From sequence record KU521356.1: DNA of 64,000 nt. One strand, written 5' to 3'. Within the stretch, counting starts at the first letter, position 1. Every line of letters starts with the position of its first letter. The notes beneath the pieces were generated by a model that was not told the DNA's origin, did not search any database, and saw only the letters and a list, made by a program, of their open reading frames with translations. Of the stretch, positions 3,281 through 58,008 are shown piece by piece. The position numbers and the translations under genes are program-made.

Positions 3281-12044
<8,764 letters not shown>

Positions 12045-13163: not shown

Positions 13164-13171
13164 TATATTAC
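13164..13171 (+). promoter_or_regulatory. phiKZ-type early promoter core TATATTAC
   Basis: Intergenic exact match to the published phiKZ early-promoter motif, with AT-rich upstream sequence, just after a terminator. Confidence 0.7.
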
Positions 13172-15998: not shown

Positions 15999-17578
15999 AT
16001 GAGCACTACCCTGACTCTGAAAGAATCTAAATACATCCCTGCAACTAATCTAGATAACCTAGAAGATTATATTGGTCGTACTTTTCTAGTCGAACGAAAT
16101 GGCGTGTCTACAGCGCATAAGCTAATTAAACTCTCTCGCCGAGATGTTTATCTTGGTTATCCGGATGGTAGGGAAGATTCATTTACATTGTCTATTAATA
16201 AATTCCGGAAGTTTTATAAACTAGCACCATCTAATCGCGATAAAAAATAAAATACGATATAATAGAGTCCCCATTACGGGGACTCTTCTTTATAATTTTT
16301 TGTTAAAAGGTATATCAAGTGTTCAATAGAATTGTTAGAGCTTTTCACATTATCGATAAAGACCAATCTAAACATGGTGAACTAGATCTACCACAATGGC
16401 CAGCCTATGTATCGGTTACTCCTAAAATTATCGACATTAGGGATAAAGAATTTAATTATCATGGTTTTATGTCACGTATCAATGCCCCTTTAAAAGTTAT
16501 AAAACCAGATGAATATATTAAAGCTAGGTATACTTTATGTTCACACTTTATTTATCAGAATGATGAAGATAATGACCCAATCGATGCACCAGGTTTTAGT
16601 ATTGACATTGAATACAGACTAATTACTCAGAATACTAAGACATGGCATTTAGATATCAACATCATCACTGATAAATCAATTAGTTACAATATCGAAAGTA
16701 TTCTAAATGCGGAATTCATGTGTCAATGTCAATTTAATCTTTATATAAACGGTAAATAGCTAATCATTTATAATAGAGGAAAGAGTATGTTTAAATCCTT
16801 GAACTTTAACTACACCACTCAACCTTCTACTGAAGGTATCTGTTTGTATATCGGTCATGGCGATATTGGACTACTTGAGGGTAATAAATTTTCAACTGAT
16901 ATTACTAAGAAATTAGAACAATGTCCTTATTACCTACATGTTACTGTTGGTGAATCAAATACAGCTAACCAATTGACCATTACTGGTTATACTAATAACC
17001 AACCTAACATCCGTAGTTGGCATGGTCAAGAAGCTATGGACATTCTGCTGAATAATATCAACAGCAATAACAATGTGGTGCAACGAGAACTTAACTTTGA
17101 AGTACTCATTGAATCAGTTGAACGTAAAGACCCGCGCGTTATTATACTAATGGCGCTAGGTGCACTTCCATCTCAAGATTACCCTGGTCATTTTAATGAT
17201 TTAGCATCCGATAAGCAACTATTCAAACGAGAAGGCTCTTTCATTGATTATAATGAAAAAGAATATAGTGATACATACAACACCATTACACGCAAATTAT
17301 TTAACCTGTGTGGCTGTGGTCATCCAGAAGCAGAGTTGCGTTATATTGATGACGTATTGGATATATATCGCCAAGGTTGGAATACTTCTAAACGTAATGA
17401 ATGTGATAAGAAATATGGATTTGGTCCGACTACATTCATGCTACATTATCTAGATAGTCTTGGATTTGCCGAGCATGGTACAGGCGCGGCCGGTTGGCTA
17501 CTCGATGAAGGTGCATGGGTTAATGTATTAGTAAAATTAGCAATTAAGGAAACCGAGGGTGGATGCACTGATGTTTAA
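15999..17578 (+). other. Hypothetical CDSs: 15999-16250, 16319-16759, 16787-17578
   Basis: ORFs with RBS. The last has a C-terminal CGCGxP...LDSLGFAEHG...WLLDEG segment. Confidence 0.65.
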
Positions 17579-18296
17579 ATTATCGATGCGTGTATTTTGT
17601 GCGGTATTTCTGATTAGTATTGGCATGTGTACTAAAGCTAGTGTTAATTACGAACCACTTGCTTTTTATGGAGTACCCTTATTCTACTCTAATCATACTC
17701 CGCGAATTGCTCCATGTAACTTCGACCAACAATCTGGACTTGGTAGTTGCGGATGGACTAGTTATCCAGAATATTCAGTTATTCCATTAGTTAAACCAAG
17801 TGATCCAACTAAACAGATTCTTGTTAATTATTCGATGTATCAAGAAGTCATCTGTAATGATGAACAATGCTTTACTTCTGATTATCATGAGCCGTATGGT
17901 TTACTCTCAGGATTTAAAGGCACCACATATTGGTCTGTGCCAACTGGTTATTATTTACTAAATGGACCCAATGGTGTACATGGTGTTAAGTTTGGTAACG
18001 GACCATTAAAAGATAATTATCCTATTCGTGATATTTACATGATAAATAATGATAGAGATATTGATGGTGAATACCTCTCTCTAAAAAATACTAAGGGAAT
18101 TTATAATGTGATGTGTAGTCCATTGACCCAGATGTGTAAATATTTGGGTAAAGAGTACACTCTATTGGAACTAAACCAATTGATTCCTTTTGTAAAGACT
18201 ACCATTTGTGATGAATACCTTTGTTACATCGATAACAGTAAAGGCAAGGTTGCAGGCATAAATCCAAAACGAAAGGATATTTACGAGGGGTTATAA
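17559..18296 (+). CDS. Exported cysteine-rich protein (signal peptide plus four Cys pairs)
   Basis: Hydrophobic N-terminus ending TKA; mature part has CNFDQQSGLGSC, CNDEQC, CSPLTQMC and CDEYLC. Confidence 0.6.
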   Translation: MDALMFKLSMRVFCAVFLISIGMCTKASVNYEPLAFYGVPLFYSNHTPRIAPCNFDQQSGLGSCGWTSYPEYSVIPLVKPSDPTKQILVNYSMYQEVICNDEQCFTSDYHEPYGLLSGFKGTTYWSVPTGYYLLNGPNGVHGVKFGNGPLKDNYPIRDIYMINNDRDIDGEYLSLKNTKGIYNVMCSPLTQMCKYLGKEYTLLELNQLIPFVKTTICDEYLCYIDNSKGKVAGINPKRKDIYEGL

Positions 18297-24602: not shown

Positions 24603-26714
24603 TTAAAACCGCATATATGCGGGCTGATATGGTTTATACATACGTGTATCAAAGTCATTAAAATCAATTGCGATATCATACTTCTCAAATGATTCTTTTA
24701 GCATCTGATAAATGATTTTATTTTCATCAAAATTATTATTTTTATCAACATAACTTTCTAATGACTCTGTGATCTCAAATGGAGATTTAATACCCATAAT
24801 AGCTTCAACCATTGCCTGACTCCATTTTAGAATGTCATCTGACCTTGTTGAGATATTCGGTTCATCTTCTGTATCGAGAGTACATTGATATACGACTGTT
24901 TGTGAATCCTGACCTTTACGGTAAATTCGAGCAATAGCTTGTTCTAGAATGTAATGCCTAAACGGTGAATTAATTGTCACCATAGTATCAGCCATCGTCA
25001 TACGGACCGCTGTTGAAAGGGAAGCATATGTAGCTACCAATGGATTTAATTTAGGGTCTTTCTCAAATCTACTGATTATTTGAGGTAAATTGTCATTGGT
25101 TTTACCATACACCACCGCCGGATGCATACCTAATTTATTGGTGTACTTATCAACAGTATCAACAACCTCAACAAACGATGTAAATGCAATCGTTTTCTTC
25201 ATAGTTGATTCAGTGATACCAACCCAGTCAATATACGGTACCATGTCCACATGGCACTGAATGCGTTTAGCACCTAAAACCCTTCCCAAACATTCACCTT
25301 GTATCTTTAGCATAACGTATTTTATAACTGATTTAATATCTCTAAAAGCAGCTATTTCATTACGAGGTAAAGTTGGCTCTATAAACATTTTTTCATATTG
25401 GTTAGATTCTTTAATTTCTTCACCAATGTATCGCGGGTCTTGATTCTTCTGAATTATTTTAATCAAATTCTTATAGCGAGCGAAACCATCTTTCTGCGCC
25501 TGGGTCTTAAGAGAGTTCTCGTGTATCGCCATTAGTTTAGCCCAATACTTCTCATCTTCTGGTCGGCGCGCAGCATAGAACTTTACACGTTCTCTAATAA
25601 AAGCTTCACAATCACGTTTAATGGCATTAAGAGTATACTGTGATCCATTTGGTATCTTGATACGATACGCTTTTATCCTCGGTGGTAAAACCTCAGTATC
25701 TTTCTTTTCAATGACGTACGCAATTAACCCAAAGCGATGTTGGACAATATCTAATCCTTTCTGTGTCTCTTTTCCAAATGCTTTCTTAAAACGTTCTTCA
25801 ACCTCATTGGTGAAGAGATCGTCTAATACTCTTAATGCACTTACTAATTCAGAACCAAGTGCTTTAACAGGGGTACCTGACGCTAATAATCTGTTATTAG
25901 AGTTAGACATAAAACATATTTGCTGGAACTTAAGAGATTGTGCAGAATTAGGATCGTTCATATTGTGTGATTCATCCAGAATCACCGTAATGTTCTTACC
26001 TTTGAATATACCGCTTCTTAATAGATCAATTATTTTATCTTGCGCCTGGTAATGGGATATAAGTATTCTTTGACCGTTGTAGGCTTTATCATCAATGGTC
26101 GACCATACTTTTTGTCTTTCCTTATACATCTCAATAATAGATGGCTTCCATATTAGATCAATAGACTTCTTTTCACAAACAACTATAATGATATCCGACT
26201 CAACCATTTCAGCAATAGCCATCGTCATGAATGTCTTACCAGTACCAGGTTTACCTGCAACAATATCACCACGTAAACCATACTGGTCAATTCGATAATT
26301 ATAATTTTCAAAATAAGCTTTTTGAGACTCATCTGGTGTAAATGTCAATTTGTCTAACATCTTGAAATTGAGTCTACCTGGTACAGAGTTGGTATCTACA
26401 GGACGAGTATTTTTTAACCAGGTATATTGAAGCATTGCTTCACGGATGGCATTAACAGTTTTAATAGAGATGTATCTACTTCTATAATTCTTTACTGCTT
26501 CTAGCATGTAATATATTTCAGGAGCAAAGAATTTATAAAATGAAATACTACGACGACTAACCGTGTTAAATAACTGCGTAGCTAATTTAGTGGTTCGCCA
26601 ATACTTGTTAATATCTCTAATGAATGCAGCACCATCAAAACCACTGATGATAATTTCTTGATCAGTTTCAGTAATTGATAGCGAGCCCATTAGCTTCCTA
26701 AATGAGTCTATCAT
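24603..26714 (-). CDS. Superfamily 2 helicase (phiKZ gp203-like)
   Basis: Motif I GKPGTGKT, motif II DESH, motif III SGTP, motif VI QAIARIYRKGQ. Confidence 0.9.
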   Translation of the reverse strand: MIDSFRKLMGSLSITETDQEIIISGFDGAAFIRDINKYWRTTKLATQLFNTVSRRSISFYKFFAPEIYYMLEAVKNYRSRYISIKTVNAIREAMLQYTWLKNTRPVDTNSVPGRLNFKMLDKLTFTPDESQKAYFENYNYRIDQYGLRGDIVAGKPGTGKTFMTMAIAEMVESDIIIVVCEKKSIDLIWKPSIIEMYKERQKVWSTIDDKAYNGQRILISHYQAQDKIIDLLRSGIFKGKNITVILDESHNMNDPNSAQSLKFQQICFMSNSNNRLLASGTPVKALGSELVSALRVLDDLFTNEVEERFKKAFGKETQKGLDIVQHRFGLIAYVIEKKDTEVLPPRIKAYRIKIPNGSQYTLNAIKRDCEAFIRERVKFYAARRPEDEKYWAKLMAIHENSLKTQAQKDGFARYKNLIKIIQKNQDPRYIGEEIKESNQYEKMFIEPTLPRNEIAAFRDIKSVIKYVMLKIQGECLGRVLGAKRIQCHVDMVPYIDWVGITESTMKKTIAFTSFVEVVDTVDKYTNKLGMHPAVVYGKTNDNLPQIISRFEKDPKLNPLVATYASLSTAVRMTMADTMVTINSPFRHYILEQAIARIYRKGQDSQTVVYQCTLDTEDEPNISTRSDDILKWSQAMVEAIMGIKSPFEITESLESYVDKNNNFDENKIIYQMLKESFEKYDIAIDFNDFDTRMYKPYQPAYMRF

Positions 26715-27010: not shown

Positions 27011-27018
27011 TATATTAC
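27011..27018 (+). promoter_or_regulatory. Early promoter core TATATTAC
   Basis: aatttaaatcTATATTAC upstream of the 27065 gene. Confidence 0.7.
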
Positions 27019-41474: not shown

Positions 41475-41843
41475 GTGATGCAATGTTTAACACACGTAAT
41501 GAAGTTAGTGGCCGTATTAAGTACGTTGTTATACGTATCAAACCCACTAGCTGCATCGTTGGTAGTTGACGAGAATTACTGTAATGGTGTTGCACTTATA
41601 GCACATGCCACAGCAGAAGCACGTCAGCGTAAAACACCCATTTTACAATGGGAAGAAAACCTACGATCCCTAAAAGGGTACGGCGTGAAGAACAAAGATA
41701 ACGTTCTTTACAATGTTCTCCCAGCAGCAATTAAAGAGGTGCACGTTGTGTATTCACGTAGACAAAGCCCACGTGATGCATACGTTACATCATTTAAAAC
41801 CTGTATGGATAACAACTACGGTAAAGCTGTGGTTGTAAAATAA
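41475..41843 (+). CDS. Exported two-cysteine helical protein (dispersed member of the 54.7-57.5 kb family)
   Basis: Signal-like N-terminus ending PLAA; mature Cys in DENYC and FKTCM. Confidence 0.55.
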   Translation: MMQCLTHVMKLVAVLSTLLYVSNPLAASLVVDENYCNGVALIAHATAEARQRKTPILQWEENLRSLKGYGVKNKDNVLYNVLPAAIKEVHVVYSRRQSPRDAYVTSFKTCMDNNYGKAVVVK

Positions 41844-41878: not shown

Positions 41879-43221
41879 ATGAGAATCTGTGGGTTGCAAA
41901 TGTATAAAGTATTTGTTATATCAATGATAACACTAACGGCTATATCAACATGTGTAACTTTCATTATTAATATAAAAAATCATTATATTCACTGGATGGG
42001 TGTTTATAAGGTTAGATATGTATTAGATAAAATGCCCAATGGCATAAGTTATTTTTTCTATCAAAATGCTGTCCAAGACATTATAGATAAAGAATCATCT
42101 AAAATAACAAATCAACATATTTTTACATCTTTTATTTACGATATCAACTCATTGATTATATTAAAATGTAATAATAGGGAAACAGCAAATGAATGATATC
42201 ATGACAGTAATTATAGGTATTTTGTTTCTGATTATAATGATGGCTTTAATTAACTGGGGTTATTATGCCATCAAACACACGATAAAGTGTAACAGGCTTT
42301 ATAAAGAAGCACTATCAATTATTGACAATATGAGTGATGGTTTATCTGAATACCAGTATACAGTAGCTATTGGACGTTTACGTAAAAAGGCATACTCTAT
42401 CGACCATTTAACTGCTGTTAAAATGTTTGAAGCATTAGACTTAGTTATTAAAGATAAGTCAAGAAAGAAAAATAAATAAGCATAAATAGGAGAGCTATTT
42501 AGCTCTCCTTTATTGCATTAAATTTTTTTTGAAATCTATATTACATATTTGGTCAAGTCATATCAAAATAGGTAGTTATAATGCTAGCATTACATTCACT
42601 ACTATTATTAGTTATAGTGATTTGTTATATAATTCATAAGTGGTTGTGGTATACTTTCAATATGTTTAAACTAAAAGACATTATTAAAAATAAAGACAAT
42701 TTAACTAATGATGAACTATTAAAATTACTCATTGATAAAATAAAGGCAACCTAATGTATCCATTCTTTACAGGTAATGAGAAAGTTACTGTAGATGTTCT
42801 TGATGATAAACATAATCTACATAGAAGTTGGACTGATTATAAACATCCCATCACGACGCGTGTGGACGGTAAACTAACCAATGTGTGGTATAAAGTTGAA
42901 CCACCGATGAGTGCTAAGGATATTGAAAATAACTTTACAATTGACAAAGATAAAGTTAAATTATCTAATCGTTTGCACCAAGCTTTAGATGCAACGTTGA
43001 TTAAAAATGAATTAGAAGAGTTTAACAAATTAATTGATCTATGTGTAAAACATGTTAATTCAGTTAGTATTCATCTAGGTCTTACTATTTGGAAATTAGC
43101 AGATACTGTAAAATATGAAAAAGCAGATTTAAAGAAACTATTTAATGCACATTATACCAAATCTACTGAACTTGTAAAAGAAAAGAATATAGTGCCCTCA
43201 GTAGAAGATATCTTCCTATAA
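41879..43221 (+). other. Hypothetical CDSs: 41879-42196, 42189-42479, 42581-42754 (57 aa, N-terminal TM segment, not in track), 42754-43221
   Basis: ORFs; 42581 lies directly after the early promoter at 42537. Confidence 0.55.
42537..42544 (+). promoter_or_regulatory. Early promoter core TATATTAC
   Basis: The 30 nt at 42516-42545 are identical to 57980-58009. Confidence 0.75.
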
Positions 43222-54258: not shown

Positions 54259-54336
54259 AATAATTACTTAATATACACCCTCCCTTCGGGGAGGGTTTTA
54301 TTTATCTTTTTTTTGTATTTAAACTATTTAAAAAGC

Positions 54337-54344
54337 TATATTAC
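54337..54344 (+). promoter_or_regulatory. Early promoter core TATATTAC heading the exported-protein operon
   Basis: Follows the terminator at 54277; upstream tgtatttaaactatttaaaaagc. Confidence 0.75.
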
Positions 54345-54377
54345 AAATATGAATTTAATAACCAAGAGGGCAATACA

Positions 54378-54641
54378 ATGACTGAACGTTTGAAATCCGT
54401 ATGGTGCGCTTGCAGCTTACTGCGTGAACGCTGGAGACACATCCAAGACATTGCTGTCGGGGATGAACATCATGTCATAGTAAAAAACGATATGCTGATG
54501 GTGTTTCGTGGTCAAGTACCGGTAGGTAGCATGTACCGGGGTGACAGTGACCCACTCATCTACGAGGGTGGTGCACTGGAAGAATTTACTAAAGTTGTAT
54601 TGGATTTAGAATTCAATACTCGTGGTGAAACCAATAGTTAA
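54378..54641 (+). CDS. Hypothetical protein
   Basis: First gene after the early promoter; RBS gagg. Confidence 0.6.
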   Translation: MTERLKSVWCACSLLRERWRHIQDIAVGDEHHVIVKNDMLMVFRGQVPVGSMYRGDSDPLIYEGGALEEFTKVVLDLEFNTRGETNS

Positions 54642-54667
54642 TAAAATTAATTTTGAGGTAATTCATT

Positions 54668-55075
54668 ATGAAATATGTAATTGTATTTATGTTGTCTATT
54701 GTAACTATCACTGCTAACTCGGCTGTCATGTACACTAATCGTGATTCATGCATCGAGTTTGTAAAACAGGCAGATGAATTGTTTGTAAAAGGTGCATCTG
54801 TAACTGAAGTGCAAATGAAGACTTATGAAAGGATTCATTATATCCTTAATAACACTAAAGATCTAAAGACCAACCAGTCTAAAGTTGAAGAACTCACTGG
54901 TCTATTTTACCTATGGTCTAAGGTAGATAAAATGGCAATTGAGGCAAGTTTGCCACGTGCAACAAATGCTGCTAAAGTCTATAAGACCACTCCTGAGAAA
55001 TTCATCATTGATGGTTATTTCCAGCGTTGTGTAGCGGCAGGTGCGTTTGAAGCAAAACCACTTACTCTAAAATAA
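54668..55075 (+). CDS. Exported two-Cys protein
   Basis: Signal peptide MKYVIVFMLSIVTITANSA; Cys in RDSC and FQRCV. Confidence 0.7.
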   Translation: MKYVIVFMLSIVTITANSAVMYTNRDSCIEFVKQADELFVKGASVTEVQMKTYERIHYILNNTKDLKTNQSKVEELTGLFYLWSKVDKMAIEASLPRATNAAKVYKTTPEKFIIDGYFQRCVAAGAFEAKPLTLK

Positions 55076-55087
55076 TGGAGGTACAAC

Positions 55088-55447
55088 ATGCTTAAGAATT
55101 GGCTATTATTCCTTTTCCTGCCAATCCTGTCCATTGCATGTCAGCCTGCCCACGCTGTAGAAGTGGGTATTACTAAGAAATCATGTAATGTGGCAGTAAA
55201 TCTTTCACAAAAAGCAACTGAGCTTTATGATAAGAACCTATCCCAATTTGAGATAATGATGCAGTTAGATATGATCTCTCGTAAGGATATGGATGACTTA
55301 GAGTTCTATGCAGGTACCGTATATGCTAAATTAAACTTAGTTGATATTCGCGTAAATAAACGAAAAGGATTTACCAATGGAGCTATTCTAGATAGGCTAG
55401 CTGAAAACTGTGTTGAAGCAATTGGTACTAAATTTAACTTGGAGTAG
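55088..55447 (+). CDS. Exported two-Cys protein
   Basis: Signal peptide ending AHA; mature Cys in KKSC and AENCV. Confidence 0.7.
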   Translation: MLKNWLLFLFLPILSIACQPAHAVEVGITKKSCNVAVNLSQKATELYDKNLSQFEIMMQLDMISRKDMDDLEFYAGTVYAKLNLVDIRVNKRKGFTNGAILDRLAENCVEAIGTKFNLE

Positions 55448-55450
55448 AAT

Positions 55451-56245
55451 ATGGTTAGTATTTATATTGTCATTATACTCATGGCTATGCTAGCTGCATT
55501 GACATGTGGTAATTTGGTAGATAGCTGGGTAAGGCCAGCTATTCTAAAGTGGTTAAATGATGATGTCGCTATTCATTTCACCAATGCTACCTGGATGGTT
55601 GGGGGGATCCCTAATAGTGTTCCAATGCAACTAGGTAAAGCTGTTTGGTTACCCAAATACGTGGGTGACGGAATACGTCTTTATATCACGGCTGATGAAA
55701 TAAAATTTGGATGGAATGGTAAAGAAAAAGATGCTTTAGCACGAGCCATTGTTGAAGTTATCTTTATTGGTAAAAATCCAAATAGTAAACTTCTTGAAGT
55801 AAGTATTAAACCTATTTGGTTACACCCTTCTATCCAAAAAGAAAGTTTCTATTTAATGTTTGATTGGGAAAAGCTTTATACAAAAAATGAAGAGATGCGT
55901 ATTTGTTGGAAGACAATACGTCACACTTTTTTCTATGGATTCCTAGGTTTGCTATTTGGCGGTAGTGCCAATGCAGATAACCTTGTATTAACTGAACGTG
56001 GATGTGACCAATATGAAGCAATGGTGAGAACTATTGCATCTAAAGCTTATATTGGATTAGATCCAGTTATGGGTAGGGAATTCATTATTAATGATCCTGA
56101 TATGTTAAATGCCCGTGAGAAAGCACAACGTAATACCCGTATCATTATCGATATGGTGGAAACTGGACAAGAACCCAAAGACATTGCATTATGGATGAAT
56201 ACTCAATGTAAACAAGAAGCAGTGTCAAATTTAATCAAACAGTAA
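55451..56245 (+). CDS. Membrane-anchored domain fused in frame to an exported two-Cys domain (internal ATG 55895)
   Basis: N-terminal TM segment; second signal peptide ending GSANA; Cys in ERGC and NTQCK. Confidence 0.6.
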   Translation: MVSIYIVIILMAMLAALTCGNLVDSWVRPAILKWLNDDVAIHFTNATWMVGGIPNSVPMQLGKAVWLPKYVGDGIRLYITADEIKFGWNGKEKDALARAIVEVIFIGKNPNSKLLEVSIKPIWLHPSIQKESFYLMFDWEKLYTKNEEMRICWKTIRHTFFYGFLGLLFGGSANADNLVLTERGCDQYEAMVRTIASKAYIGLDPVMGREFIINDPDMLNAREKAQRNTRIIIDMVETGQEPKDIALWMNTQCKQEAVSNLIKQ

Positions 56246-56258
56246 AAAAGGCATAGAT

Positions 56259-56642
56259 ATGAAAAGAAATTTTGAAGATGATCACGTGGTAATGGCAGTG
56301 GAAGTATATGAGAAACTGAAAGAAGCTGCTGCTTATTCATTACACTCTTCTGAAATTAGTAAGATCGAACGACATATGCGTAAGTTTAATCGTGTTCAAC
56401 GCGATAAACATATTGAAAATATGCATATGGAAATGCTTGAGAAACGCGAGGCTATTAGAAAAGCAAAATCTTTCTTTTCTCAAAATGCCGGTAAAATTGG
56501 TTGCGTAGTAGATAGGCTTGTCAAAGTATGTGAAGTGTATAAAATGGATAAGTCTATGGTGGTTGTTGAGTTTCTCCAACATAAATCTAAAATTAAAGTT
56601 CCAGTAAATCCTGAAAAAATTACTATTCTTACCATTAAATAA
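56259..56642 (+). CDS. Hypothetical protein, paralog of 30944-31546
   Basis: Shared N-terminal pattern (see findings). Confidence 0.65.
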   Translation: MKRNFEDDHVVMAVEVYEKLKEAAAYSLHSSEISKIERHMRKFNRVQRDKHIENMHMEMLEKREAIRKAKSFFSQNAGKIGCVVDRLVKVCEVYKMDKSMVVVEFLQHKSKIKVPVNPEKITILTIK

Positions 56643-56659
56643 ATGAAGAAGGATTTAAA

Positions 56660-57115
56660 ATGAAAAATGTAATTGCAGCAGCTTTCGCTGGTCTCATTGC
56701 CATTACCGGTATCATGTTCAATACCGCAATGGCTGAAATCAAGATTGGTAAAAAAGATGCTCAACTCACTGTGCAGTCGTGTGCAATGGTTGAAACCATT
56801 ACTAAACAAGCTGTATTTCGAATGAGTGAAGGTCATAGCGCAGATGAAGTTGGTGTGCTTATGCTCAACAACTCTGCTAAACTAAAAGATGAGTTGGATA
56901 CCAATAATTGGATTGCGTTAACATTCGTATTCAATAGTCTTAATAAAATCAATAATGACCTTAACAGTAAAGAGATCCATGATTATATCCGTAGTCAAGG
57001 TTACAATGTGACTACTCCTAATCTGGCAGCTTTTATCAGCGGGTATTATGGCAATTACTGCATGAAGCATATTGGTGAGAAATTCACTCACATGGTAATT
57101 GTTGAACTCATTTAA
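56660..57115 (+). CDS. Exported two-Cys protein
   Basis: Signal peptide ending AMA; Cys in VQSC and GNYCM. Confidence 0.7.
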   Translation: MKNVIAAAFAGLIAITGIMFNTAMAEIKIGKKDAQLTVQSCAMVETITKQAVFRMSEGHSADEVGVLMLNNSAKLKDELDTNNWIALTFVFNSLNKINNDLNSKEIHDYIRSQGYNVTTPNLAAFISGYYGNYCMKHIGEKFTHMVIVELI

Positions 57116-57147
57116 TTCATATCGAATACTTTCAAAAGGAAAATAGG

Positions 57148-57525
57148 ATGAAATACGTCTTCTCGCTCATTATCACTATGGTAGCAATGTCGGTTAATGC
57201 ACAACCCGTAACCGTGTCATCTTGCTACGTGCTGCACAGCTTGGCAAAGAATATGGTTCAATTCTACACTAATGGCGGTGAGCCATTGGAGATGTATGCA
57301 ATACTGCAAGATGAACTATCCATTGCCATAGATAAAAACCAGAGTGATAAGGCACTCGCTATTAATATCGCATTGGATAATGTCGATGTAATATACCAAA
57401 ATCTCACTGATCCCGCACTTAAGCTTTTGGCAAAGAGCGAGGGAAGTGATCTTGGTGAGATGCTGACTGAAAAACTCAGTAATGGGTGTTTCAATATAGT
57501 CGGCGAGGAGTTGTATGATAACTAG
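57148..57525 (+). CDS. Exported two-Cys protein
   Basis: Signal peptide ending VNA; Cys in VSSC and SNGCF. Confidence 0.7.
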   Translation: MKYVFSLIITMVAMSVNAQPVTVSSCYVLHSLAKNMVQFYTNGGEPLEMYAILQDELSIAIDKNQSDKALAINIALDNVDVIYQNLTDPALKLLAKSEGSDLGEMLTEKLSNGCFNIVGEELYDN

Positions 57526-57944
57526 AATCATCCTAATTGTTGCATGGGTATGGGTAATCTCTCTTATGGGAATGATTACGTATGTTCTTTATGATACGTA
57601 TCAATTTCGTAAGAAATTAGAAATGCCTGTTGTAGAATGGGAAGATAAGGCGAAGGACACTCCTGTTAAGAAGTGTCCAGATGAAGTATTATTCGCTGAA
57701 GACCCAAAGGATGGCAAACTCAAAATGGGATGCCCTGAGAGTTATAAGAAATAATTAGAGGACCTTCGGGTCCTCTTTTTAACCGACTGGACGGTTAAAA
57801 CTAGGTGGGATAAATTAAACTATTTGAGGAAATCTAATGCAACTTAGTAATGAACTTTTCTATGTGGGTATGGTAGCTGTATCAATGTCAATCGGTATGC
57901 TATTTAGCTATATTTATCACACTCATAAGAAAAAATATAAATAA
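57515..57944 (+). other. Small membrane proteins: 57515-57754 (TM plus two Cys) and 57837-57944 (35 aa, not in track)
   Basis: Single hydrophobic segments; RBS gagga before both. Confidence 0.55.
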
Positions 57945-58000
57945 AGTCATAAACCCTCTCCCAAAGGAGAGGGCTTTTACATTAAATTTTTTTTGAAATC

Positions 58001-58008
58001 TATATTAC
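58001..58008 (+). promoter_or_regulatory. Early promoter core TATATTAC
   Basis: Follows the terminator at 57953. Confidence 0.75.

Follow-up and report, generated by a model that had tools for sequence, protein, structure and literature searches.

An early-type operon of phiKZ-like phages encodes exported two-cysteine proteins that are candidates for action on the host envelope

The genes gp246.1–gp253.1 of Pseudomonas phage KTN4, a member of the species phiKZ, form a single operon behind a promoter of the phiKZ early type, and they encode among them a family of small, divergent proteins that are predicted to cross the inner membrane of the host. The stretch of DNA analysed here (the window) comprises 64,000 nucleotides of sequence record KU521356.1; positions are those of the window, are converted to coordinates of the KTN4 record by adding 186000, and refer to the plus strand unless stated otherwise. 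Positions 54300–58000 are 100% identical to KTN4 and 99.9% identical to phiKZ, and the open reading frames (ORFs) of the array correspond to phiKZ gp246.1, 247, 248, 249, 250, 251, 252, 253 and 253.1, with gp229 as the dispersed sixth gene. The domain shared by the family, of approximately 90–125 residues, is modelled as a bundle of four to five helices with a saposin-like topology, in which the terminal strands are paired and one predicted disulfide ties the first helix to the last. It is proposed that the operon supplies exported modules of this family early in infection and that these may give periplasmic protection against secondary phage attack or lysis from without. Confidence is high for the anatomy of the operon and for export and low for the function, so that the statement taken as a whole is tentative and is placed somewhat short of an even chance.

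The family is undescribed, and its members are the first candidates for proteins through which a nucleus-forming phage acts on the envelope of its host. Research on nucleus-forming jumbo phages has centred on the cytoplasm, namely on the shell, protein import, the tubulin spindle and counter-defence. Two recent jumbo-phage reviews are silent on periplasmic or envelope-directed phage proteins, and the words periplasm, superinfection, lipoprotein and signal peptide are absent from a jumbo-phage review of 2026. phiKZ and its Pseudomonas relatives appear to devote an early transcription unit to a conserved, multi-copy, envelope-directed family with a confidently predicted fold, and the operon is an entry point to envelope conditioning, competitor exclusion and the early firing of the host envelope-stress regulon. 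The predicted fold family, which is saposin-like but has a single disulfide and a clasp of strands, would add to the few phage effectors known from the periplasm. OMKO1 and other phages of the phiKZ type are in therapeutic use, and genes that shape phage–phage interference at the envelope are of practical relevance when therapeutic phages of this type are characterised.

Boundaries and promoter of the operon

A single operon behind one early promoter had been proposed in the original prediction, and this arrangement is borne out by the terminators that bracket the genes and by the motif that precedes them. The upstream gp246 unit ends in an intrinsic terminator (54277–54296) with an 8-bp GC-rich stem, a 4-nt loop and a T run; the hairpin is also kept in L003, a relative of 70–85% identity found in public sequencing data. 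Next, at 54297–54344, comes a promoter motif of the phiKZ early type (virion RNA polymerase), made up of a T-rich stretch and then TATATTAC at 54337–54344. At the far end the operon is closed by a strong intrinsic terminator (57954–57973), with the next early-type promoter at 58001, and a weak hairpin with a short T tract between gp253 and gp253.1 (57757–57776) is possibly a leaky terminator.

By itself the TATATTAC octamer is not enriched (13 copies, 7.6 expected). The 45 bases upstream of the octamers at 13164, 42537, 50833, 51265, 54337, 58001 and 60686 share a pattern of a terminator followed by T/A-rich sequence; a site closely similar to this extended motif lies at 27011, and the intragenic copies of the octamer lack the pattern. 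The same promoter architecture is found upstream of the first family gene (gp247) in L003 and upstream of gp302–303 in phiPA3. The early promoter of phiKZ has been published as an extended -10 element plus a T-rich element (PMC8244752), and phiKZ early promoters are read by the virion RNA polymerase (PMC7598289). Since the extended motif agrees with this description, the operon promoter is assigned to the early type, and the motif suggests that the operon is expressed early. The sites at 13164, 27011, 42537, 50833, 51265, 54337, 58001 and 60686 also provide a map of the early transcription units in this arm of the genome.

Exported proteins and their cysteine pairs

Export signals were sought with a rule-based scan for a charged n-region, an uncharged hydrophobic core and small residues at positions -3 and -1. 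It selects gp247, gp248, gp251, gp252 and gp229, each with an n-region, an h-region and a cleavage site of the A-x-A type. The first family gene, gp247 (54668–55075), encodes a divergent member of 135 amino acids (aa) with a predicted signal peptide and a helical domain of 116–119 aa that carries Cys28 and Cys121. The product of gp248 (55088–55447; 119 aa), the core and most widely conserved member, has a lipobox ending in Cys18 and a predicted saposin-like domain with Cys33 and Cys108. In gp251 (56660–57115; 151 aa) a predicted signal peptide (A-M-A) precedes a family domain of 126 aa with Cys41 and Cys134, and in gp252 (57148–57525; 125 aa) a predicted signal peptide (V-N-A) precedes an acidic domain of 107 aa (isoelectric point (pI) 4.2) with Cys26 and Cys114. 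The dispersed gp229 (41478–41843, from the annotated start at 41478; 121 aa) has a predicted signal peptide and two Cys that are invariant across 9 orthologues. Its designation as a sixth copy holds for the signal peptide, the two Cys and the predicted fold described below, but the gene does not stand behind an early-type promoter motif and its product has no detectable sequence similarity to the rest.

The domain originally placed at 55895 is indeed a two-Cys domain behind a signal-like segment, but it lies in frame inside gp249 and is not a separate ORF. The product of gp249 (55451–56245; 264 aa) starts with a hydrophobic anchor, which is followed by a domain of ~125 aa, by an internal segment that the scan identified as signal-like (residues 149–175, ending A-N-A; 55895–55975) and by a C-terminal two-Cys domain of 89 aa, here called gp249C (55976–56242, in frame with gp249). 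Read from Met149, the segment has an n-region of charge +3 and a 13-residue core, too short for a membrane helix, before the A-N-A. From its charge distribution gp249 is predicted to begin with a short anchor in N-out orientation, followed by ~125 cytoplasmic residues and then by a C-terminal domain that is exported; in L003 the frame of 264 aa, the internal signal and the four Cys are all kept. gp249C may be freed by cleavage or translated from the internal Met, but an independent start at this Met looks weak because the purine-rich GAAGAG directly abuts the ATG with zero spacer.

The mature parts of the proteins are 89–126 aa long, and one Cys is found 8–16 residues from the start and the other 11–17 residues from the end, which agrees with the placement of one Cys near each terminus that had been described at the outset. 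Every Cys of the array proteins is kept in L003. As 10 of 154 other small proteins show the same N- and C-terminal pattern, the pair is weak evidence for any one protein but strong evidence for five in a row. Approximately 7–9 credible secreted proteins are found by the scan among the 364 ORFs of the genome, four of which lie, together with gp249C, within this 3-kb operon; the simulated probability of at least four secreted proteins within six consecutive genes is 3e-4 to 2e-3.

gp248 is likely to be a lipoprotein, since Cys18 ends a conserved lipobox (defined as [LVI]-x-[GAS]-C at the end of the hydrophobic region of the signal). The lipobox is canonical in seven of the nine orthologues that carry the Cys (phiKZ, L003, phiPA3, PA1C, Phabio, a Phabio-like metagenomic copy and 201phi2-1), ending S-I-A-C in phiKZ, F-V-G-C in phiPA3 and Phabio, F-T-G-C in PA1C and L-I-S-C in 201phi2-1. 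In Psa21 and RVTF4 the site departs from the canonical form, and the Cys is absent from two metagenomic relatives (P0016 and P0017). Both phiKZ gp248 and the Phabio protein are named ‘Lipoprotein’ in UniRef, and an A-x-A site five residues downstream of the lipobox is an alternative cleavage point. The earlier view that every member carries a Sec-type signal, in most cases ending in A-x-A, is retained for gp247, gp251, gp252, gp229 and the internal signal of gp249, but is replaced for gp248 by most likely lipidation.

The operon ends, as had been noted from the sequence, with two small single-pass membrane genes. The first, gp253 (57515–57754; 79 aa), overlaps the end of gp252 by 11 nt and encodes a protein with two Cys in its tail; at 96% identity in L003 it is the best conserved gene of the operon. 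The second, gp253.1 (57837–57944), encodes a membrane peptide of 35 aa.

Relationships within the family

Pairwise Smith–Waterman comparison with shuffling detects significant similarity only between gp251 and gp252 (z = 6), with most other pairs at noise level. When orthologues are added, hhalign aligns gp251 with gp252 at an expectation value (E) of 3.7e-6 and gp248 with gp251 at E 2.7e-3, and it aligns a group of PA1C, Psa21 and RVTF4 proteins with gp251 (E 2.3e-5) and with gp248 (E 1.2e-4). These profile alignments are all collinear across the whole domain. Exactly three columns are invariant among 19 aligned sequences, namely Cys1, Cys2 and a Gly five residues past Cys2, and the C-terminal motif of the family is C-x4-G-x-[KE]-[FLIY]. 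A family hidden Markov model (HMM) run against every ORF of the genome recovers gp248, gp251 and gp252, then gp247 (E 0.0023), with the next match at 0.5. For gp247 the hhalign comparison with the core family gives E 2.2e-5 when signal peptides are included and 0.009–0.014 without them, and gp247 is also related to one PA1C protein (z = 5). Neither hhalign nor the family HMM finds a significant sequence link between the core family and gp249C or gp229.

Judged by sequence, gp248, gp251 and gp252 are homologous, and gp247 is weakly linked to them as a homologue; gp249C and gp229 are joined to the family solely via predicted structures. The paralogy proposed for the whole set, for which an all-versus-all hhalign comparison had been named as a check, stands to this extent, but it does not reach gp249C and gp229 by any significant match. 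The gp248 family can be defined by an export signal, a short strand, Cys1 starting helix 1, three to four more helices, Cys2-x4-Gly-x-[KE]-[FLIY] and a terminal strand. This description fits gp248, gp251, gp252 and relatives in six phage lineages; gp247 has a relaxed form of it, and gp249C and gp229 conform by pattern and by fold match in BFVD alone.

Every gene from gp246.1 to gp253.1, as well as gp229, is annotated as ‘hypothetical’ and none is marked as virion-associated; text searches of the literature for the PHIKZ locus names of the operon genes found no paper. The remark in the original prediction that no named family could be recognised is supported: scans of the operon proteins against Pfam, NCBIfam and PADLOC gave nothing significant, nor did PDB sequence-profile searches with core-family and gp229-family queries. 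A search of PHROGs matched only self-families (15284, 22400, 26535, 27482, 22383 and 16193), all of them function-less by annotation. Each phiKZ protein seeds its own PHROG, gp251 additionally touches the PHROG of gp248 (E 0.0026), and PHROGs divide what is one family or fold.

Predicted structure of the domain

Mature gp248 was modelled with AlphaFold2 from an alignment of 19 sequences, and Foldseek was used to compare the model with the PDB and with the models of BFVD. The model is confident, with a predicted local distance difference test score (pLDDT) of 91.9 and a predicted template modelling score (pTM) of 0.81, and contains a strand at residues 7–9, helices at 12–30, 35–49, 53–64, 66–74 and 79–92, and a strand at 97–99. 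The N- and C-terminal strands pair with each other, being the sole two strands in the model. In model numbering the cysteines are Cys15, where the first helix begins, and Cys90, where the last helix ends, and they stand 7 and 8 residues away from the strand pairing; as both invariant Cys are about equally far from it, a disulfide in gp248 is geometrically expected. A fold tied by a disulfide between the N- and C-terminal parts had been anticipated, with AlphaFold and Foldseek named as the check, and the gp248 model together with its matches to gp229-type proteins and probably to gp249C is in keeping with this.

Among the BFVD models, those of the gp248 orthologues of phiPA3, Psa21 and 201phi2-1 match at E 1.7e-6 to 3.5e-4. 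The entry A0A5C1K8Y4, verified as the PS119XW orthologue of gp229, matches the gp248 model with a template modelling score normalised to the query (TMq) of 0.75 and a probability of 1.00. An entry of 151 aa matches with TMq 0.71 and one of 264 aa with TMq 0.69 and a probability of 0.85, their probable identities as gp251 and gp249, respectively, of a phiKZ isolate being taken from length and accession series. The shared fold is therefore supported for gp229 and probable for gp249C at the level of models. The BFVD model of gp247 is a poor match (TMq 0.41). An AlphaFold2 model of gp247 built from a 9-sequence alignment is all-helical, one Cys opening its first helix and the other closing its last, and is of low confidence (pLDDT 55); a Foldseek search with it places two family members at ranks 4 and 5. 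Further viral entries in BFVD match the gp248 model with probabilities up to 1.00 and TMq up to 0.77, among them B3FJU6 (201phi2-1, 161 aa), A0A1Y0SWC8 (Phabio, 157 aa), unnamed entries, and ‘Lipoprotein’ entries of BcepSauron and other phages. In view of these additional matches, the fold may extend further among phages than the sequence family does.

Distribution and evolution

Outside the phiKZ species, gp247, gp249 and gp251 were detected only in L003. Orthologues of gp248 lie directly downstream of, or near, the gp246 homologue in phiPA3, PA1C/PS119XW, Phabio, Psa21, RVTF4, D6 and 201phi2-1, and orthologues of gp229 occur in phiPA3, 201phi2-1, Phabio, PA1C/PS119XW and RVTF4. Counted at syntenic loci, as distinct from full scans of the other genomes, phiKZ has five members (six with gp229), PA1C has three, Psa21 and RVTF4 have two apiece, and phiPA3 and Phabio have a single one; the stretch of 201phi2-1 examined holds one gp248 orthologue and one gp229 orthologue. 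The family locus is syntenic in five further phage genera. Nearly all matches from word-indexed protein searches were copies from the phiKZ species, and a HMMER scan of 1.84 billion representative proteins gave 8 hits. Seven of these are true and all phage-like; the eighth, an ankyrin-repeat kinase, is spurious. Since these seven are the only true hits, the family as detected by sequence appears confined to Pseudomonas nucleus-forming phages. The idea of a duplicated family, for which copy number across related phages had been singled out as a check, is supported by the one to five copies per syntenic locus, but within this one group of phages only.

Between KTN4 and L003 the operon genes are 60–96% identical, as are their neighbours. 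The ratio of non-synonymous to synonymous substitutions (dN/dS) of the orthologues is 0.03–0.23 in this comparison, in which synonymous sites are saturated, and is like that of neighbouring genes. The family had been described as diversifying; with dN/dS at most 0.23, diversifying selection is rejected, and the paralogues are better understood as old duplicates that are under purifying selection and are not diversifying now.

Phage carrying a transposon inserted in orf252 proved viable, and orf184–304 is a region mostly dispensable in the laboratory, with host-interaction functions suspected by the authors (preprint 10.1101/2025.11.23.690004).

Proposed function and its alternatives

To our knowledge, characterised early periplasmic phage proteins are mainly superinfection-exclusion factors. 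In the mechanism proposed here, RNA polymerase of the virion-borne class would read the operon promoter, and small phage-specific proteins would cross the inner membrane once infection starts. They would take several forms: gp248 as a lipoprotein, gp247, gp251 and gp252 as soluble periplasmic proteins, and the C-terminal domain of the membrane protein gp249 as an exported domain, with gp229 encoded elsewhere and two tiny membrane proteins rounding off the operon set. The paralogues would be binding modules, each gripping its own component of the envelope or its own portion of an incoming phage; different partners for each module are expected from their pI values, which span 4.2 to 9.4. Together the modules would turn the envelope of the newly infected cell refractory, through superinfection exclusion or through protection from lysis from without. 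The accessory status suggested by the viable orf252 insertion and the early induction of the host AlgU (envelope-stress) regulon in phiKZ infection are also counted in favour of this proposal.

The closest functional parallel is offered by Spackle (gp61.3) of phage T4, an early periplasmic protein with a cleaved export signal, a mature length of 75 aa, a helical bundle and a single disulfide joining sites near the N- and C-termini, which works with the membrane protein Imm and guards the infected cell against secondary infection (PMC7677548). Protection against secondary attack is ranked first because Spackle agrees with what is predicted for the phiKZ proteins in timing, compartment, size class, helical nature and N-to-C disulfide, and likewise acts alongside a membrane protein. 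The phiKZ proteins resemble Spackle in their early-type promoter motif (a motif-level likeness, conserved in L003 and phiPA3), in the predicted export signal, in the small helical bundle of the AlphaFold2 model, in the invariant Cys pair and in the small membrane proteins encoded alongside. They differ in that the domain is larger (89–126 aa against 75 aa), has a terminal strand clasp and occurs as five or six paralogues, and in that the set includes a predicted lipoprotein and a membrane-tethered form; binding to a tail lysozyme is known for the Spackle type only. Membership of a Spackle-like fold was considered and rejected, there being no sequence or fold match in the PDB searches.

The Llp protein of phage T5 is an early lipoprotein that prevents superinfection. 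As a probable lipoprotein behind an early-type promoter, gp248 resembles the receptor-blocking proteins Llp and Cor (phi80/N15), whereas only one of the six phiKZ proteins is predicted to be lipidated. Homology to the Llp and Cor families was not found: none of the operon proteins matched an annotated PHROG or a Pfam family. The proteins are best described as a new family that may work like Spackle or like saposins.

Several points weigh against a role in exclusion. The early timing of the operon is deduced from a promoter motif and export from simple rules, and the proximity of the two Cys in gp248 is inferred from the strand pairing. Spackle (6X6O and 6XC0) is absent from the 50 best Foldseek matches in the PDB and from 33 PDB sequence hits with E up to 10, and superinfection exclusion for phiKZ is not reported in searchable papers. 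The best fold matches are instead lipid-binding saposins, which indicates a different activity.

Because of this saposin-like fold, lipid binding or membrane remodelling stays a serious rival, although it is judged unlikely. In such a scheme the bundles would open like saposins and bind or extract phospholipid, lipopolysaccharide (LPS) or lipid-linked precursors, so that the inner membrane on its outer face, or the outer membrane in its inner leaflet, would be remodelled early, and other phages would be affected only secondarily, if at all. Saposins themselves are lysosomal or secreted proteins of eukaryotes. The best PDB match of the gp248 model is saposin A, which is weak by E (0.44) and has a probability of 0.96, TMq 0.58, a score normalised to the target (TMt) of 0.69 and a root-mean-square deviation (rmsd) of 2.9 Å. 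It is followed by Na-SLP-1, saposin C and the saposin-like insert of prophytepsin, none at E of 0.001 or below, with TMq of 0.49–0.58 and TMt of 0.57–0.69 for the saposin-like matches overall. In the gp248 model, helix order and packing are similar to those of saposins A and C, Na-SLP-1 and the plant-specific insert, and the first and last helices are likewise tied by a disulfide, which in phiKZ is predicted. An independent, weak sequence-profile match to saposin C (E about 0.4), the probable lipid anchor of gp248 and the activity of host envelope-stress promoters early in infection point the same way, the AlgU regulon having been reported as induced early in phiKZ infection (PMC8244752). Against this, the Foldseek matches have E of 0.44 or worse and the sequence match is also non-significant; the phiKZ domain has two Cys and one predicted disulfide where saposins have six and three, it has added terminal strands, and it has no Pfam SapB signature. 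A small helical bundle with joined termini can also be the product of convergence.

Rather improbable is the proposal that the proteins act as immunity-like or counter-defence binders, directed not at other phages but at weapons that target the envelope, or defences located in it, in Pseudomonas, such as pyocins, cell-wall hydrolases secreted by neighbours or membrane-bound defence sensors. An array of divergent small periplasmic binders with very different charges would suit such a role, as would the position of the genes in a large non-essential arm for which the authors of the transposon-sequencing (TnSeq) study suspected host-interaction functions, and the restriction of the family to phages of one host genus. 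The proposal is, however, pure analogy: no PADLOC, Pfam or NCBIfam match was obtained, and immunity-protein structures are absent among the top PDB matches.

It is a distinct long shot that Sec-dependent export would deliver the proteins, instead of or besides to the periplasm, into the lumen of the early phage infection vesicle, if that vesicle derives from the inner membrane, and saposin-like domains would there act on the bilayer from within and aid release of the genome into the protein-shelled phage nucleus. Were this so, a virus would be taking membranes apart inside a bacterium in the saposin manner of the lysosome. In favour, the family has been found in nucleus-forming phages alone and stands behind an early promoter, the predicted fold is saposin-like, and the vesicle has been proposed to come from inner-membrane lipids (preprint 10.1101/2024.03.24.586471). 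By sequence, though, the family is absent from nucleus-forming phages of other hosts than Pseudomonas, yet the vesicle is general; moreover, orf252 is dispensable and a lipoprotein member suits the periplasm better. Finally, that there is no real family, only unrelated small ORFs with hydrophobic starts and a coincidental Cys pattern, would account for the noise-level pairwise similarities and for the occurrence of the N/C Cys pair in 6.5% of other small proteins, but it is scarcely credible in the face of the significant profile matches, the invariant Cys, Cys and Gly columns in 19 sequences, the confident common fold, the synteny in five other phage genera and the purifying selection, and it is already contradicted for gp248, gp251 and gp252.

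Additional genes and observations

Two genes of the operon fall outside the family. The first gene, gp246.1 (54378–54641), encodes a protein of 87 aa without an export signal. Its GC content is 0.447, against 0.355 for the window, and it is missing from L003; a copy 69% identical is carried by the PA1C-like phage HPP-Temi, identity between these lineages being typically ~30%. It is probably a recently acquired small mobile ORF that was set between the promoter and gp247. The second, gp250 (56259–56642), encodes a basic protein of 127 aa without an export signal and is a cytoplasmic gene within the array, with the highest dN/dS of the operon (0.23). A resemblance of gp250 to Phd/YefM antitoxins is sub-threshold (E 0.075). 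The two family members of Psa21, and likewise those of RVTF4, are also separated by a cytoplasmic gene, as in the phiKZ array.

In phiKZ, gp229 is followed by gp230 and gp231 (41900–42479), two small single-pass membrane proteins that mirror the end of the operon. In phiPA3, PA1C and Phabio a conserved single-pass membrane protein of 51–56 aa with a C-x-[RK]-Y-P-L-x-C motif is encoded just downstream of the gp248-like gene, at 10484–10648 of the phiPA3 locus (L004), where it is unannotated, at 11251–11421 of the PA1C locus (L005) and at 3851–4006 of the Phabio locus (L006). It has an early-type promoter of its own in phiPA3 and PA1C, and it may be a partner of the gp248-like lipoprotein. The equivalent position in phiKZ is held by gp253, in which the Cys spacing differs.

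Some public entries for these ORFs call for comment. The record of phage U5 names them as MazF toxin-antitoxin protein, DNA methylase and methyltransferase, and nothing found here backs those names. Many short protein entries labelled ‘Klebsiella pneumoniae, partial’ are fragments at least 86% identical to phiKZ proteins and are probably phage reads inside bacterial assemblies.

Two further ORFs encode proteins with export signals. A 245-aa ORF at 17559–18296 of the window, unrelated to the family, encodes a probably exported protein with a signal peptide and a mature part containing eight Cys. Outside the window, on the minus strand of KTN4 at 275287–275700 (26287–26700 of locus L012), an ORF of 137 aa has a signal peptide and a long, Gly-rich, glycine-zipper-like middle, and its product is a candidate envelope protein.

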